Positions 33,064-40,731 of a DNA stretch of 64,000 nucleotides are shown piece after piece. Numbering within the stretch: position 1 is the first letter of the stretch; each line of letters opens with the position of its first letter. The DNA lies in assembly GCA_964234715.1 (NCBI GenBank), contig OZ174275.1. One strand, given 5' to 3'. The notes beneath the pieces were generated by a model. That model saw only the letters and a list, made by a program, of their open reading frames with translations, had not been told where the DNA came from and made no database searches. Made by a program: the position numbers and the translations under genes. The stretch comes from Podarcis melisellensis. Lineage: Eukaryota.

Positions 33064-33887
33064 GTGAGTTTGAAAAGCTTCTAATTTTAGTTGTTTGCAC
33101 AAAAACTGAAGAGGGTTTGGAGGACAAATTTCATAGACACAAAATTGTGAGCAAATAATTCTACTGTCAGGAGTAAGTTGGCCAGGCATCAATATTTATA
33201 GCAAAACCCTTTCCTTGCCATATTCTAAGCTCCACCCCTTGCAGGAGCTTCCTCTCTTAACTGCAGAGATCTTGGACTGGACAATATACATGTTGTAGTA
33301 AGGCTGCTTGTGGTGCTTCTCTGTGGGTCCACAAAATGTAGTAGAACTAATCTGCCAAGACCACTATTATATCTGCTGCAGCTTATTTTTTAAACATCTG
33401 TCTAAATTGAGCATTAATAAATCCTGTTGTCTCTGATTAGTGGAGCTTGTGTGAAAGGAAGACCTGGGCATTGCAAGGGCCCTTGGTGCACCCCATGAGC
33501 TCTGCACACAGACGGTCTGAGGATGACTTGAACAATTAGCTTTCTTCGATATGCAAATTTGCTTTCAATTTGCATATTGAAGTAGTAGGCTGTTTATTGT
33601 TTTAATCTGCTGGTGCTAGAGTTTGTTCTTTAAAATATCTTTACACAATTTTCAATAGAAGCAGAAATATATACTTGCGTTGGGAGAAGAGAGAAAAAAC
33701 GCATAAATACATAAGTAAAAAAAAAAAGAATAGGAAGCATTCTCTGGCATAGTTTTTTTATTAGGATAATTATATATTTTTAAAAAATATTGAATGCTTT
33801 ATATATTTTCTAAAGACCTGCTCAGATATGTGAGCTGCTGTAGGATGGCTTTGTCCTGAAATTCATTACTGGAATAATATATATGTA

Positions 33888-34295
33888 TGTGATGGGACGA
33901 TGAGCTGCTTGTGCGTAAAATGCAAGTCCCTCAGAGTTTGATCAGGTTTTCAAACCTCTGCCTGTGACGGAGCCCCTCCAGCATGGCTGCGTCAATCACT
34001 AGTAGAATCCGAAAGTGGCTGCTTTCGGAAACGTTTCCAACATAAAAGCTCCTTAACGGAAACACGTCGTCTGGCCTCTCGGCGTGACAGTTTCCGTCGA
34101 GGTGTGGGTGTCCCTATAGGAGGTCCTGAGACCTCCCCACTGGTTTCGCTTGAAGCGTCTCTGAGCCATCCCTCCGACTCACTTTCCCTTGGAGTTCTTG
34201 CTCGCCCTCTACTGGTTCCCTCTTCCGCTGCTACTGCTCTCTCAACCTCAGGGAGCCTTTGCACCTGCGGCGCTTTAGATGTCAGTTCCCTGACA
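33888..34295 (-). repeat. 3' LTR (408 bp)
   Basis: Direct repeat of 38978-39385, preceded on the minus strand by the polypurine tract. Confidence 0.97.
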
Positions 34296-37200
34296 TCCAC
34301 CTCCCCTCCAGGGCCCCCTTCACCCCCTCCCGTCTCCTCTCCTACTGGCGGTGAGGAGGTAAAACCCCTGAAAGAACCTCCCTCATCTTCCGACGTCGCG
34401 AACACTTCCTTCCACTTGTTGCTGTTCCTACTCTCTAGGTACTCTTCGTCATCAGAGTCCACTCCATCTTCCAACTCCGACTCCGCGAACCCTTCCATTT
34501 CCTCTTCCTCATCGGTGGTGCCGAAATACTCCCTCCTAAACCTTGCTATAGGCTGAGGTTTCCTCGGGAACCTTTGGTGGAACGTTTCTGTTAAAACCTC
34601 GTCATTGACTTCCTCTGCACTTACCCAGGTGTTTTCTGACTCCGGTTCCCCTTCCCACGCCACCAAATACTCCACCTGATTACCCTTCCACCTGGAATCG
34701 AGGATTTCCGCTACATGGTTGCGGCGTTCCCTCTCTTCCAAGGCTGGTCCCCTGACGTGCTCCCCTTCACGTCCCCCCCTGTATGGTGACAGTAACGACC
34801 TGTGGAACACTGGGTGCAATTTCATGTGGTTGGGTAATCGGAGTTTGAAAGCTACCGGGTTGACCTGCTGAATCACCTCAAAGGGTCCCAATCTTCTGGG
34901 CCTCAGTTTCTTACAACCCCCTTTGAACGGCAACCCTTGGGTTGACAACCACACTTGATCCCCCACCCTTATGGTTTCACCTTCCCTTCTGTTCTTGTCT
35001 GCCTGCTTCTTATATTGTGCCTTGGCCCTTTCTAAGTTAAGCTGGAGCTGCTGATGGATGGCTTCCATCTCTTCTACAAAATGTTCAGCCGCTGGAACGC
35101 TCCATCTCTCCCCTCCTTCCCCTGGAAATGCCCTGGGGTGACACCCGTAATTAGCCAAAAAGGGACTCATCCCTGTGGACACATTCTCCGCATTATTGTA
35201 GGCAAATTCTGCCAACGCCAACTTTTCGACCCAATCGTTCTCTCTGTCATTGACATAACACCTAAGATATTGTTGAAGAATGCCATTTGCCCTTTCCGCC
35301 TGCCCGTTGGTTTCAGGGTGCCGGGCAGTTGAAAAATTAACTTCCACGTGTAGCAAGCTCATGAGCTTCCTCCAGAACCTGGAAGTAAATTGTTTGCCTC
35401 GATCTGAGATCACCCTCGAGGGAGCCCCGTGCAACCTAAAGATATGTTCCACAAACAACTTCGCCGTTTCTTCCGCTGTGACTGCATGTGAGCATGCTAC
35501 AAAATGGCACATCTTAGTTAACAGGTCTACTACTACCATGATGGCTGTTTTCCCCTTGGACCTTGGCAGATCCGTCATAAAATCTATTGATATCGCTTCC
35601 CAAGGCCGTTCTGGTGTGGGTAAAGGTTCTAATAACCCTGCCGGCGCCCTTCTTTCCCCTTTGGCTCGCTGACATTGGTCACACCCTCTTACATACTCCC
35701 TTACATCTTCCCTCACCTTAGGCCACCAAAATTCCCTGGTAACCAACCACATGGTTTTGTGTTGCCCAAAATGTCCCGCCGTGGGGCTATCATGCAACTG
35801 CTTGAGTACTCTCCCCCTCAATTCACCTTCGGGTATATACAGTGCCCCTTTGTAATACAATGCCCCATTTCTTTCCTCAAAACCTCCGGGGCTCTCGCCC
35901 TCCCCCCTGAGACCTCTGAGCTTATCCTGGGCATATTCATCATTTTCCGTTTCCTCCACCAGTTCCCGTTGCCCCACCAGCGCCGCCCCACACACCCAGC
36001 GGTCCTCCGGGATGACATGTCTCTCTTCGATCACCTCCTCCCCTTCCCAATATTCTGGTTTGCGTGAGAGCGCATCCGCCCTGACGTTTTCTGGGCCTGG
36101 CACATAACAAATCTCAAAGTTAAATTTGGAGAATTCCTGTGCCCATCTCACTTGTCGTTGGTTGAGCACTCGAGCTGTTCTCCAATACTCTAAATTTTTG
36201 TGGTCGGTGCACACTTGCACCTTGTGTTGTGCCCCAATTAATAAATGTCTCCACCTCCGGAATGCTTCGTGAATGGCAAGTAGTTCCCTGTCATACACCG
36301 TGTAATTCCTCTCGGACTTATTCAGTTTCCGCGAGAAGAATGCACACGGTCTCCACTCCGACGCACTCCTCCCCGGTTGAAGAAGGACCGCCCCTATAGC
36401 CCGGTCGGATGCATCTGTTTCCACTCTCATGGGTTTTTGTAAATCCACATGCAGAAGTTGTTCTTCCGAGGCGAAAGCCCTTTTCAGTTCTTCAAAGGCT
36501 CGATCCGCCTCCACCGTCCAAACAAATTTCTTCTTGCTGCTGAGGCAGTCGGTGATGGGCGCCGTCAAGTGGGCAAAGTTCTTGATGAACTTCCGATAAA
36601 AGTTCCCAAACCCCAAGAATCTTTGCACGTCCTTCTTGGTCTTCGGTGTCTTCCATTCCAGTACCGCTTGAACCTTGCCTGGATCCATGGCCAATCCCTT
36701 GTCTGACAAGCGGTACCCCAGGAATTCCACCTCCTTGGTATGAAACTGGCACTTCTCCAGTTTCACCCACAGCTGGTTGGCTTGCAGCCTGCCCAACACT
36801 TCTCGAACGTCCCTCACATGCTGTTCCTCATCTTCCGAATACACCAACACGTCGTCTAAAAAGGCCACACAGTTCTTGTAGAGCAAAGGTCCCAGAACGT
36901 GGTTTATAAAAGCTTGAAAACAGGCGGAGCCCCCTTGTAGACCGAAGGGCATAACGAGGTATTCAAAGGCTCCCAAAGGGGTAAACATGGTGGTCTTCCA
37001 TTCATCTCCCTTCCTTATGCGTATCAGATTGTACGCCCCCCGCAGGTCCAGTTTTGTAAAAATCTTTCCCTTCCTTACTCTGGTCAAAATGTCGTCAATT
37101 CGGGGCATAGGGAAAGCCAGGGGCTCCGACACTGCATTGAGGGCCCTGAAGTCACACACCAGTCTCGGTTTGTCTGTGTTCTTTTTGTCCACAAAGAACA

Positions 37201-37972
37201 CTGGGCTGCCCCCCACCGCTCGGGACTCTCTGATGAAACCTCGCTTCAAGTTTTTGTCAATGAACTCCCTCAGCTCCTGCATCTCCCTGTCTGACATGGC
37301 GTACAGCTTGCCTACTGGGAGTTGGGCCCCTGGGAGTAGGTTGATTTGACAGTCAAAGGGTCTATGCGGTGGCAGTTTGTCTGCTTCCCTTTCGCTGAAT
37401 ACGTTGCTCAGATCTGCGTATTGCGGGGGCACCTTCCCTTTGCCCATCACTTCCATCCCCGCTAGGGTGACTCTGTCTCCTCCCGAGACCTTCCCCTCCT
37501 TGCAGTGTTCTAGGCAATGCGCTGACCCAAAGGAGACCACCCTCTGATGCCAGCCCACTAGCGGATCGTGTAGCGCCAGCCAGCTCATCCCCAAAATGAT
37601 GGGCGCTCCTCCCAGGATGGCCACATTAAACGCTATCTGTTCGGTGTGCCTTGCCACTCTCATTATCATCGGGACAGTCTGTTGGCTAACTTCTCCCCCC
37701 AACAGCTCTCTGCCGTCAATCGTAGTCACCTGCAAGGGGTTACTTAAAGGGATGGTCTGTATCTGGTGCTCAGCTGCAAACTCCTTACTCATGAAATTAC
37801 AGGAGCTGCCTGAATCCAAAAGCGCCTTGACCTTTAGTGGGTGTCCGTTTGGCAGTTCTAGTAACACCTCTATCACTAAAGCAGGTCTGGGAGGTTCTGG
37901 CATGGGCACTTTCATTGCTCTTTGGCCTGGCTGCTGTGCCCCGACGGTGGCAGCCAGGCGTTGGCTTTTACT
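33992..37972 (-). CDS. pol: Pol polyprotein (protease, RT, RNase H, integrase, chromodomain, acidic/basic tail), expressed by -1 frameshift from gag
   Basis: Protease LLDSGS; RT KLDLRGAY, MPFGL and FLDD; RNase H TDAS and TDHKNL; integrase H..H/C..C, IDF, SDRG..F, NGQAER and GPF; chromodomain EILDSR..VEYLVAWEG..ENTW. The start shown is the inferred slip site. Confidence 0.95.
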   Translation of the reverse strand, partial: SKSQRLAATVGAQQPGQRAMKVPMPEPPRPALVIEVLLELPNGHPLKVKALLDSGSSCNFMSKEFAAEHQIQTIPLSNPLQVTTIDGRELLGGEVSQQTVPMIMRVARHTEQIAFNVAILGGAPIILGMSWLALHDPLVGWHQRVVSFGSAHCLEHCKEGKVSGGDRVTLAGMEVMGKGKVPPQYADLSNVFSEREADKLPPHRPFDCQINLLPGAQLPVGKLYAMSDREMQELREFIDKNLKRGFIRESRAVGGSPVFFVDKKNTDKPRLVCDFRALNAVSEPLAFPMPRIDDILTRVRKGKIFTKLDLRGAYNLIRIRKGDEWKTTMFTPLGAFEYLVMPFGLQGGSACFQAFINHVLGPLLYKNCVAFLDDVLVYSEDEEQHVRDVREVLGRLQANQLWVKLEKCQFHTKEVEFLGYRLSDKGLAMDPGKVQAVLEWKTPKTKKDVQRFLGFGNFYRKFIKNFAHLTAPITDCLSSKKKFVWTVEADRAFEELKRAFASEEQLLHVDLQKPMRVETDASDRAIGAVLLQPGRSASEWRPCAFFSRKLNKSERNYTVYDRELLAIHEAFRRWRHLLIGAQHKVQVCTDHKNLEYWRTARVLNQRQVRWAQEFSKFNFEICYVPGPENVRADALSRKPEYWEGEEVIEERHVIPEDRWVCGAALVGQRELVEETENDEYAQDKLRGLRGEGESPGGFEERNGALYYKGALYIPEGELRGRVLKQLHDSPTAGHFGQHKTMWLVTREFWWPKVREDVREYVRGCDQCQRAKGERRAPAGLLEPLPTPERPWEAISIDFMTDLPRSKGKTAIMVVVDLLTKMCHFVACSHAVTAEETAKLFVEHIFRLHGAPSRVISDRGKQFTSRFWRKLMSLLHVEVNFSTARHPETNGQAERANGILQQYLRCYVNDRENDWVEKLALAEFAYNNAENVSTGMSPFLANYGCHPRAFPGEGGERWSVPAAEHFVEEMEAIHQQLQLNLERAKAQYKKQADKNRREGETIRVGDQVWLSTQGLPFKGGCKKLRPRRLGPFEVIQQVNPVAFKLRLPNHMKLHPVFHRSLLSPYRGGREGEHVRGPALEERERRNHVAEILDSRWKGNQVEYLVAWEGEPESENTWVSAEEVNDEVLTETFHQRFPRKPQPIARFRREYFGTTDEEEEMEGFAESELEDGVDSDDEEYLESRNSNKWKEVFATSEDEGGSFRGFTSSPPVGEETGGGEGGPGGEVDVRELTSKAPQVQRLPEVERAVAAEEGTSRGRARTPRESESEGWLRDASSETSGEVSGPPIGTPTPRRKLSRREARRRVSVKELLCWKRFRKQPLSDSTSD
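34296..34309 (-). other. Polypurine tract (PPT) of the LTR element
   Basis: Minus strand GGAGGGGAGGTGGA directly abuts the TGTCAGG start of the 3' LTR. Confidence 0.85.
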
Positions 37973-38931
37973 TGCTCCTTGCTTTCCTCTTCCTTTCCCC
38001 CAACAGCTCCTGCCATCCCTTGCCATTCCTTTCTTTGTGGGCAGACTCTGGCAAAGTGCCCTGGCTGTTGGCAGAGATAACATCTCTTGGCGCTCTTTCC
38101 CTCCTTCTTCCGCCCTTCACTGGGATTTGAAACTGCGCGCGCCCGCGCTGTTCCAACTTCCATCGGCTCTGCCGGCGGGAAAGATGGCTCTGGAATGTCT
38201 GGAATGCGGAACTCCCTCCAACGGTCTCCTTTCCCTTCCCGCCTTTCCAAAGCCCTCGCCTCCTGGCGCGCTCCTATGGCCAGCGCAGATTTGGTTAATT
38301 GGTCCATAGACTCCGCCCTGGGCCCCCGGGAAAGCTCATCTTTGACGGTTGAAGAAAGCCCCTCTTCGAAAAGCATTTGGATGGGCTCCGCCGATAGGTC
38401 CCACCCCAATTTATGAATCAGCATAGTAAATTCAGTCCAGTACTCACGGACAGATCTGCTTCCTTGCTGGCAAGCCATTAACTGCCTTCGCACCACCCCC
38501 TGCTCAATATCGCTGGAAAACATCAGGTCCATGGCACGAAAAAACTTCCTCGTGTCCTTTAAGATCTCATTATTCGCTGCCATCAGGGGTCTAACCCAAT
38601 CTTTCGCCCCGGATTCGAGATGGCCAATCACATACGCCACTCGCGATTCCTCGTCGGGGAAGTCATCAAACTGCAAGTTTAGAGCGTATTGCATCTCTGT
38701 TCTAAAGGCATGATAGTTCCTGGGATCCCCCCCGAATTTCTGCACCAATCCTGGTACCTTTCTGGCGAGCGGGGTGGTTTTCTCCTTTCCCTTTTCTGCA
38801 TCCTGAGCCCTCCTCTCCTCAAGCCTCGCCGTTTGCAGCGCCAACTGGATCTCCAACGCTCTGTACCTTTCTTCCAGGCTTGGACCCCCTCCAGCTGCTC
38901 CTGCACCCCCGGTTCCGGCTGGGTTGCTCAT
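37912..38931 (-). CDS. gag: Gag (339 aa; capsid plus CCHC zinc knuckle), sushi/PEG10-like
   Basis: ATG at 38931 (MSNPAGTGG, A at -3). Retrotransposon Gag motifs FGGDP..Y..F, QGSRSVREY..EF and F.EGL, and knuckle CYLCQQPGHFARVC. Confidence 0.92.
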   Translation of the reverse strand: MSNPAGTGGAGAAGGGPSLEERYRALEIQLALQTARLEERRAQDAEKGKEKTTPLARKVPGLVQKFGGDPRNYHAFRTEMQYALNLQFDDFPDEESRVAYVIGHLESGAKDWVRPLMAANNEILKDTRKFFRAMDLMFSSDIEQGVVRRQLMACQQGSRSVREYWTEFTMLIHKLGWDLSAEPIQMLFEEGLSSTVKDELSRGPRAESMDQLTKSALAIGARQEARALERREGKGDRWREFRIPDIPEPSFPPAEPMEVGTARARAVSNPSEGRKKEGKSAKRCYLCQQPGHFARVCPQRKEWQGMAGAVGGKEEESKEQVKANAWLPPSGHSSQAKEQ

Positions 38932-38964
38932 GATGCTTCTCTCTGCACAAGCTGGCTTTCGGTG

Positions 38965-38975
38965 ACTTTCGGATT
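38965..38975 (-). other. Self-priming primer-binding site
   Basis: Minus strand AATCCGAAAGT lies 2 nt after the 5' LTR and is exactly complementary to ACTTTCGGATT inside the LTR (39096-39106). There is no TGG tRNA-type PBS. Confidence 0.8.
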
Positions 38976-38977
38976 GC

Positions 38978-39385
38978 TGTGATGGGACGATGAGCTGCTT
39001 GTGCGTAAAATGCAAGTCCCTCAGAGTTTGATCAGGTTTTCAAACCTCTGCCTGTGACGGAGCCCCTCCAGCATGGCTGCGTCAATCACTAGTAGAATCC
39101 GAAAGTGGCTGCTTTCGGAATCTTTTCCAACATAAAAGCTCCTTAACGGAAACACGTCGTCTGGCCTCTCGGCGTGACAGTTTCCGTCGAGGTGTGGGTG
39201 TCCCTATAGGAGGTCCTGAGACCTCCCCACTGGTTTCGCTTGAAGCGTCTCTGAGCCATCCCTCCGACTCACTTTCCCTTGGAGTTCTTGCTCGCCCTCT
39301 ACTGGTTCCCTCTTCCGCTGCTACTGCTCTCTCAACCTCAGGGAGCCTTTGCACCTGCGGCGCTTTAGATGTCAGTTCCCTGACA
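38978..39385 (-). repeat. 5' LTR (408 bp)
   Basis: Direct repeat of 33888-34295. By eye only 2 mismatches (39121, 39123). Confidence 0.97.
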
Positions 39386-40731
39386 ATGTACTACAGCCTC
39401 CATGCAAAGCCATACTAGTTTGGAAGTAGAAGGCAGATTTTCTGTCTCCATAGTGTCCATGAGCATAACACTCTTTTCTGTCTCTCATAAGAATGAACAA
39501 CAAGTATTAATATAAAAGAGAAATGGGTAGATTCGTGGATATCATGGGATAGGGATTAATTTCCTCCTGTCTCCATTCACCACAGCAGTCCTAGTCGCCA
39601 GGATCAGACTGATCTGCAGAGCAAATGTTCTATATAATCTATAATCCAGTGACAATATTTTCATGGGTAGGTTTTCCCCCCCAAAAAATTGGCATCTGTT
39701 TTGATTCATCAAAAGCATGCTCCCGAACTAATCTTGACCATAGCACAATGTTACAGAATGTTGGGAACTGGCTTTTAGATATTCAAATAATTCTTTCTTT
39801 CCCAGATGGTTTTCTTGCCAAATCACTTGTTGGGCCAGATTCAAGTACCCCAGTTTGCTAGAGTAATGGTGAAAAAACAGTTGGGATGAAGATGATATAG
39901 GCTAGAACAGCTGGGCTGCCCCCTCAGACAGAAGCCAATATGCTCTTAGGGAGTTTTTGCCACTGCAGCTGCCACCACGTACAAGACAAGGCATTTTTAA
40001 AAGCAGCCTGCTGCTACAGCTGTGGGAGCTGCACCACATAAAACAGTAGAGAGAGTCTCATCATAGAGTACACAGTGTCCTACATTATACAGAAAGAGAC
40101 TCTTTGGATCGCAGCCATAGGTTTGAGTTAAAGCTAATGGTGATTTATATAAGCCAGTGGTTGCCATCCTTTTTGGACCAGTGGGCATATTTTGAATTTT
40201 GCTGGGGGTGCAAGTCCCAAAATGGTGGCAATGGGGGTGTGGCATATCATACAATGGCTGTCATAGGGTCTGGCAAAATACAATATTAGAGAGAGTACAA
40301 TCATGATGCTTTCCTCATAATTGTATTTCCATACAAGAAAAGGCTTAACCTGTTGAATATCTGCCTTGAAAATAAAGCGGCAGGAGGAAAATCACATTAA
40401 AGGGGGGGGTGAAGTACCTCTTTAGGATCCTAGGAATTCCTATTTTCCTGGTGTCTAAACTACTCATCAGTCACAACTATGACAACACTGACAAGTGGGA
40501 GCATCCAGGCTTGCTCATTTCACAGACATTGCTTAGAACGGTACCTTCACCTTTTGCTTCATGGCTTTCTTTCTAGGAGGGTTAGATACTTGATTCTTTG
40601 CGGGGGAGAGTCTGGGGACACAACTGAAGGTGCTTGGTTGGTGACCCCTGATAAATAGTCATATCTGATAGCTATATTCCTTTACAGTTGCCACCCAGGT
40701 TTCTTAATAATAGGGTATAATACAGATCCAG

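Follow-up and report, generated by a model that had tools for sequence, protein, structure and literature searches.

The window, i.e., the whole analyzed stretch of 64,000 nucleotides from the lacertid lizard Podarcis melisellensis, hosts an intact Ty3/Gypsy chromovirus that is young and of the Tf1/sushi type, and reverse transcription of this element is very probably started by Tf1-type self-priming. An 11-nt segment of its long terminal repeat (LTR) pairs exactly with a primer binding site (PBS) located 2 nt past the 5′ LTR, both segments covary among related copies, and the same arrangement recurs in other families.

Element anatomy and primer binding site

LTR-LTR alignment and Pfam matches defined a minus-strand element with two 408-bp LTRs, a target site duplication (TSD), and intact gag and pol genes, thereby confirming the first-pass annotation, which had described an intact copy. 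The 5′ LTR (38978 to 39385, minus strand; TGTCAGG...CATCACA), whose end at 38978 was set by the LTR-LTR alignment, and the 3′ LTR (33888 to 34295, minus strand) are flanked in this alignment by the TSD TACAT (39386 to 39390, minus strand, on the 5′ side and 33883-33887 on the 3′ side). The gag gene (37912 to 38931, minus strand; 339 aa) encodes a capsid and a CCHC zinc knuckle (Pfam Retrotrans_gag, Ty3_capsid, and zf-CCHC). The pol gene (33992 to 38083, minus strand; 1363 aa) was assigned by Pfam and motifs to protease (PR), reverse transcriptase (RT), RNase H (RH), and integrase (IN), followed by SH3_Tf2-1 and a chromodomain, with the Pfam matches RVP_2, RVT_1, RT_RNaseH, Integrase_H2C2, rve, SH3_Tf2-1, and Chromo in this order. 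Catalytic motifs were found for PR (DSG), RT (FLDD), and IN (HHCC and DDE). In the RT motif, FLDD replaces YxDD at pol residue 408 (~36862-36851, minus strand); it is found in 36 of the proteins compared, including Podarcis families with 54-95% Pol identity, and is therefore a lineage trait and no defect. Relative to gag, pol lies in the -1 frame with an overlap of 171 nt, inside which the heptamer GGGAAAG (37993 to 37999, minus strand, gag frame) represents a candidate -1 slippery site resembling the PEG10 slippery site GGGAAAC. Furthermore, the purine-rich tract GGAGGGGAGGTGGA (34296 to 34309, minus strand), adjoining the 3′ LTR in the LTR-LTR alignment, is a candidate polypurine tract (PPT) for plus-strand priming.

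The leader between the 5′ LTR and the gag ATG (38931) comprises 47 nt and contains no TGG, in agreement with the first-pass annotation, and thus no tRNA-type PBS. Instead, the PBS AATCCGAAAGT (38965 to 38975, minus strand), identified by pairing and covariation, follows 2 nt (GC) past the terminal CA of the LTR; no other candidate PBS was seen past the 5′ LTR. A 2-nt spacer between LTR and PBS corresponds to the layout of retroviruses, two bases being trimmed by integrase. On the minus strand, ACTTTCGGATT (39106-39096) in the LTR is the exact reverse complement of AATCCGAAAGT (38975-38965), so that the perfect 11-mer pairing initially described was right in coordinates and sequence. This LTR segment (39096 to 39106, minus strand), which covaries with the PBS, is the proposed self-primer and putatively forms the first 11 nt of the transcript, i.e., the start of R; an identical 11-mer is present in the 3′ LTR at 34016-34006. 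The duplex amounts to exactly 11 bp, with C opposite C at either end barring any extension. A perfect complement of at least 11 nt was obtained for 11 out of 20,000 shuffled LTRs (offsets of 0-8 nt past the LTR; 5.5e-4), and among the other internal 11-mers just 1 out of 4672 has a perfect complement in the LTR. ARAGORN detected zero tRNAs in the window, and an Rfam E-value scan of the element returned zero matches.

Two PBS-like words occur in the vicinity. A second CCGAAAG (38956-38962, minus strand), 3 nt past the PBS, would offer the primer an alternative pairing register of 7 bp; it reads CTGAAAG in L002-L004 and L010 and is absent in the L005 group and L011. The word TCCGAAAG (39119-39112, minus strand) is located just upstream of the proposed start, on the other side of which the self-primer completes an inverted repeat with it; pairing of this word with the copy in R would be confined to the 3′ U3-R end of the RNA. 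It was dropped as part of an RNA structure, showing no covariation with the primer in other haplotypes.

Covariation, recurrence, and the proposed start of the transcript

A Gag search of read assemblies from public sequencing runs yielded four close relatives (84-95% identity), the contigs of which were fetched together with one more carrying a close Pol relative. The set for the covariation analysis comprised eight copies, i.e., the window element and seven lizard read-assembly contigs hosting both 11-mers (gag 84-95% identical); the Gekko locus L001, a 47-kb spliced gene model, was left out of the comparison. The eight copies resolve into four haplotypes of the 11-mer pair, each of them perfectly complementary: LTR 11-mer ACTTTCGGATT with PBS AATCCGAAAGT in the window element and L003, ACTGTCGGAAT with ATTCCGACAGT in L005, L006, L009, and L015, ACTGTCCGATT with AATCGGACAGT in L010, and ACTGTCGGACT with AGTCCGACAGT in L011. 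Positions 4, 7, and 10 vary, position 10 with three states, and the opposite arm matches every change. In the consensus fold, this is represented by changes on both sides at three of the 11 pairs and zero broken pairs. The check for covariation of the two 11-mers suggested in the first-pass annotation thus turned out in favor of its proposal, with all three variable positions compensated. The mismatches bordering the duplex are constant, leaving 11 bp exactly in every haplotype. In the model established for Tf1 and retroviruses, the plus-strand PBS arises as a copy of the primer, so that lockstep change would be expected from self-priming itself, beyond the effect of selection alone.

Six other elements were inspected for the sequence past their 5′ LTR, with LTR ends taken from LTR-LTR alignment where two LTRs exist. 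These represent six further vertebrate chromovirus families with mutually unrelated PBSs, each perfectly complementary to a segment of its own LTR. In a second Podarcis lilfordi family (L016; Pol 56% identical to the window element) the PBS complement comprises 11 nt (7 out of 3000 shuffles), and in an Anolis carolinensis family (L017; Pol 46%) 10 nt (0 out of 2000 shuffles). Among the more distant elements, with Pol identities of ~40%, a complement of 10 nt was found in a Prochilodus element (L013; 3 out of 5000 shuffles) and of 9 nt each in the inner and outer Labeo elements (L014; 50 and 85 out of 5000 shuffles, respectively). A contig of unknown origin (L012; Pol 49%) carries a PBS complement of 11 nt, its LTR end not being definable. 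In all other families except L012, the PBS lies 1-2 nt past the CA of the LTR. The fish loci L013 and L014 are nested insertions of one sushi-type element within another, each with its own LTR pair.

The complementary LTR segment begins 30-32 nt past the start of an A/T run (6 nt or longer) in each of the seven families, with only one to nine such runs per LTR, and opens with a purine preceded by a pyrimidine. A TATA-like run ~30 nt upstream of a pyrimidine-purine step is the geometry of a TATA-dependent RNA polymerase II (Pol II) start. This provides strong, although indirect, evidence that the complementary LTR segment represents the 5′ end of the RNA. Within the window LTR, just two A/T runs reach a length of 6 nt; one of them, the TATA-like TTTTAT (39132 to 39137, minus strand), starts at -31 from 39106 and is accompanied by the initiator-like start context CCA(+1)CT. 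TTTTAT is kept in four of the five family haplotypes and was lost by synonymous changes in L011. Since the run also forms part of conserved Pol-tail codons (E L L C W), its conservation may reflect coding. Contig ends were considered as an additional indicator of the start site and discarded as uninformative, as the contigs start 29-99 nt before the gag ATG or extend into U3.

Based on these data, the proposal that the transcript starts at ~39106 and primes itself is supported by covariation, by recurrence in six families, and by the A/T-run geometry. As we infer them, initiation of the transcript, cleavage, and priming would proceed as follows. Pol II would start at A39106, 31 nt past the TATA-like box, and the first 11 nt of the RNA (ACUUUCGGAUU) would fold back on the PBS, 2 nt past U5. 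The RNase H of the element, the domain of which is intact according to Pfam, would then cleave after nt 11, where the duplex stops in all haplotypes. The freed 3′ OH would be extended via GC and further through U5-R, yielding minus-strand strong-stop DNA. During plus-strand synthesis, the 11-nt RNA primer would be copied into the PBS, by which the PBS would automatically track any change of the LTR 11-mer.

Among the competing explanations, the one retaining most weight, albeit unlikely, accepts self-priming but places the start elsewhere than 39106, with the 11-mer being internal and freed by two cuts or provided in trans from a co-packaged RNA. The start at 39106 is indeed deduced from sequence, the TATA-like run is missing in L011, and a second TATA, CCTATAGG (39208), is present upstream within the LTR. 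However, this second TATA is not conserved (TGTA in L005, L006, and L009), whereas the pairing ends exactly at 39106 in every haplotype, and the spacing of -30 to -32 together with the pyrimidine-purine step at -1/+1 is found in seven of seven independent families.

Still less probable is a scenario in which the long-range pairing serves RNA circularization, packaging, or translation control and another primer is used. Regulatory structures are common in retroelement leaders, and priming has been experimentally demonstrated for Tf1 only, whereas for the window element it is predicted. Yet the site 2 nt past the CA is precisely where the minus-strand primer must anneal for complete LTRs to be formed, and neither an alternative PBS, nor an Rfam match in the element, nor a tRNA in the window was found. 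Furthermore, the strict retention of 11 out of 11 pairs despite drift suits primer copying better than selection on a helix that tolerates G-U pairs.

Priming by a host tRNA, annealing as a tRNA half or via its 3′ terminus or an internal stretch, would be the default for LTR retroelements and is nevertheless highly improbable here. A CCA end cannot pair where TGG is absent. The four PBS haplotypes differ at three positions while each fits its own LTR, so that a fixed host tRNA offers no explanation, and seven families show seven unrelated PBSs, each of them matched by the respective LTR. Finally, complementarity by chance or as a side effect of the repetition of CCGAAAG, for which the similar words at 39119-39112 and 38962-38956 in a somewhat repetitive region might speak, is negligible in view of the shuffle frequency and effectively refuted by covariation, since the 11-mer pair covaries and the two other motif copies do not.

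Leader folding and the LTR-encoded Pol tail

For the RNA between 39106 and the gag ATG, the structure of lowest energy comprises three hairpins inside the 11-bp duplex, which forms its closing helix. The fold energy of the whole 5′ untranslated region (UTR) is no better than that of shuffled sequences (z = -1.29), and total stability therefore provides no evidence. The consensus fold of five haplotypes retains the duplex and, in R-U5, a hairpin formed by CAGAGGTTTG and CAAACTCTG (39022 to 39050, minus strand). The hairpin arms show no variation among four haplotypes, the loop of 10 nt is hypervariable, and one closing pair covaries; possible roles include packaging, 3′-end formation, or function as a U5-IR analogue.

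The first-pass annotation additionally contained an 8-bp stem between U5 and the leader that brackets the PBS. The sequences of both arms, GCACAAGC in U5 (38997 to 39004, minus strand) and GCTTGTGC in the leader (38945 to 38952, minus strand), are present and complementary as described, whereas the helix as such stays within chance expectation and lacks covariation. Out of 1000 leader shuffles, 253 reached a helix length of 8 bp or more against R-U5 (G-U allowed); restricted to Watson-Crick pairs, ~0.05 would be expected by estimate. Three fish elements gave non-significant results in this shuffle test as well. Among the family copies, the two arms hardly vary, and variants only break pairs: the sole change in the U5 arm, G to A in L005, L006, L008, and L009, disrupts one. 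As the stem crosses the primer-PBS duplex, its formation would create a pseudoknot. For Tf1/sushi elements, a "pretzel" of the 5′ UTR has been described, in which the primer-PBS duplex is combined with two duplexes joining PBS-adjacent and LTR sequences (PMC10085805). The U5-leader stem could correspond to one of these flanking duplexes, judged from its position; covariation and helix shuffles gave no support for the Tf1 pretzel flanking duplexes in the window element. A GUGAU/AUCAC duplex beside the primer, found in the minimum-energy fold, was rejected, being broken in L003 and L005.

The window LTR (38978-39385, minus strand) carries no canonical polyadenylation signal by which the R/U5 boundary could be set, neither AATAAA nor ATTAAA or common variants thereof occurring anywhere in it. 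AATAAA follows the proposed start in the fish, Anolis, and second Podarcis LTRs.

The Pol reading frame continues past the purine tract, covers ~100 codons of U3, and stops 22 nt into the proposed R. The LTR-encoded tail covers 33992-34295 (minus strand), the same bases being present in the 5′ LTR at 39082-39385. With its end ...PRRKLSRRE[A/S]RRRVSVKELLCWKRFRKQPLSDSTSD and an identical stop, the tail is preserved in all subfamilies as well as in annotated proteins of P. muralis, and substitutions within it favor third codon positions (e.g., 13/8/30 and 11/8/24 at positions 1/2/3). The self-primer encodes P-L-S-D-S, with its variable positions 4, 7, and 10 coinciding exactly with codon third positions; therefore, the wobble change in the LTR likely came first and was followed by the PBS. 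Taken together, we tentatively propose, at somewhat less than even likelihood, that the same few dozen LTR bases act as core promoter and transcription start, as self-primer, and as the conserved C-terminal tail of Pol/integrase, with primer changes admitted only at the wobble positions 4, 7, and 10 and the non-coding PBS 130 nt away following by primer copying.

According to the LTR-LTR alignment, the 5′ and 3′ LTRs differ by two bases at adjacent sites (39121-39123 versus 34031-34033), by which one Arg codon of the Pol tail is altered. This codon reads CGT in the 3′ LTR, as in L003, and AGA in the 5′ LTR, while CGA, CGC, or AAG (Lys) takes its place in other subfamilies. This paired difference may originate from recombination of co-packaged RNAs rather than from two mutations after insertion.

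Relation to known retrotransposons

The closest proteins are Podarcis muralis entries annotated as "Gypsy retrotransposon integrase-like" (94-95% identity), with P0001 being the closest Pol. Outside lizards, the best Pol matches are mostly chromoviruses of fish, amphibians, and fungi (39-49%), besides one grass match (35%). In terms of solved structures, Gag is best related to the PEG10 capsid (7lga, E = 1.2e-4) and Pol to the Ty3 Gag-Pol (7q5b); the Pfam matches of Gag include the RTL1-8/LDOC and PEG10_N-capsid families. The window element shows the Ty3/Gypsy order PR-RT-RH-IN with a C-terminal chromodomain, and a PBS past the CA of the LTR that is complementary to the LTR itself (11/11 bp, 2-nt offset). 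Its termini TGTCAGG...CATCACA fit the terminus motifs TGTYANR and CNTNACA of the Sushi clade (PMC3601003, Table 3), and gag and pol are arranged for a -1 frameshift, as is typical of group members other than those of fission yeast. In these sequence-level characters, it agrees with the Tf1/sushi group.

Tf1 and Tf2 of Schizosaccharomyces pombe as well as Tj1, Tosmo, and Tcry of other fission yeasts likewise lack a tRNA PBS and carry a chromodomain integrase, and the Tf1-type elements of fission yeast share the 11-nt self-primer from the RNA 5′ end as well as a PBS just past a 5′ LTR ending in CA (PMC10085805, PMC4600332). In contrast to Tf1, Pol of the window element extends ~100 codons into the LTR. 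With the sushi elements it shares the motifs at the LTR termini (PMC3601003) and the -1 frameshift between gag and pol, and the fish sushi-type elements examined display the same geometry of TATA, self-primer, and PBS. Self-priming has likewise been predicted for sushi-ichi and other Tf1/sushi elements of vertebrates (Butler et al. 2001, J Mol Evol 52:260; as cited in PMC10085805 and PMC4600332). Differences to sushi elements concern the squamate, i.e., amniote, host, the short 408-bp LTR without AATAAA, and a protein-coding stretch that takes up part of U3 and extends just into R. The PEG10/RTL (SIRH) genes have a related Gag (PEG10 capsid 7lga; RTL1-8/LDOC, PEG10_N-capsid); in contrast to the complete, mobile window element, they are domesticated single-copy genes without LTRs, PBS, or mobility. 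The tRNA-primed Ty3/Gypsy elements (Ty3 and plant chromoviruses) correspond in overall genome plan, with Pol being closest to Ty3 (7q5b). Their characteristic PBS of ~10-18 nt, starting with TGG and complementary to a tRNA 3′ end, is absent from the window element, the primer of which would instead derive from its own RNA.

The novelty initially attached to the signature was overstated, considering that the mechanism is already a common trait of Tf1/sushi elements, vertebrates included. According to PMC10085805, PMC4600332, and PMC6317226, which cite Levin 1995/1996, Lin & Levin 1997/1998, and Butler et al. 2001, self-priming was shown for Tf1 and is common among Tf1/sushi elements, those of fungi as well as those of vertebrates. 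Squamates are also known to host full-length chromoviruses that are presumably active (PMC3670739). The mechanism itself stays unchanged and is expected for the clade; usefully added are a natural series of covarying pairs, the geometry of the start site, and an overlap between coding, promoter, and primer functions.

The analysis extends the signature of Tf1-type self-priming to young, apparently intact squamate elements from three separate lizard families, to which the natural covariation of LTR 11-mer and PBS, evolving in lockstep, adds evidence. The steady spacing from TATA to primer translates into a simple prediction of start site and U3/R boundary within a clade where such boundaries are rarely known. 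If the triple role of the LTR bases holds true, the natural variation of the family would document, for an amniote element, how the primer is copied into the PBS, and would point to a translated, LTR-encoded extension of the integrase. These lizard families belong to the chromovirus lineage held to be ancestral to PEG10 and other RTL genes.
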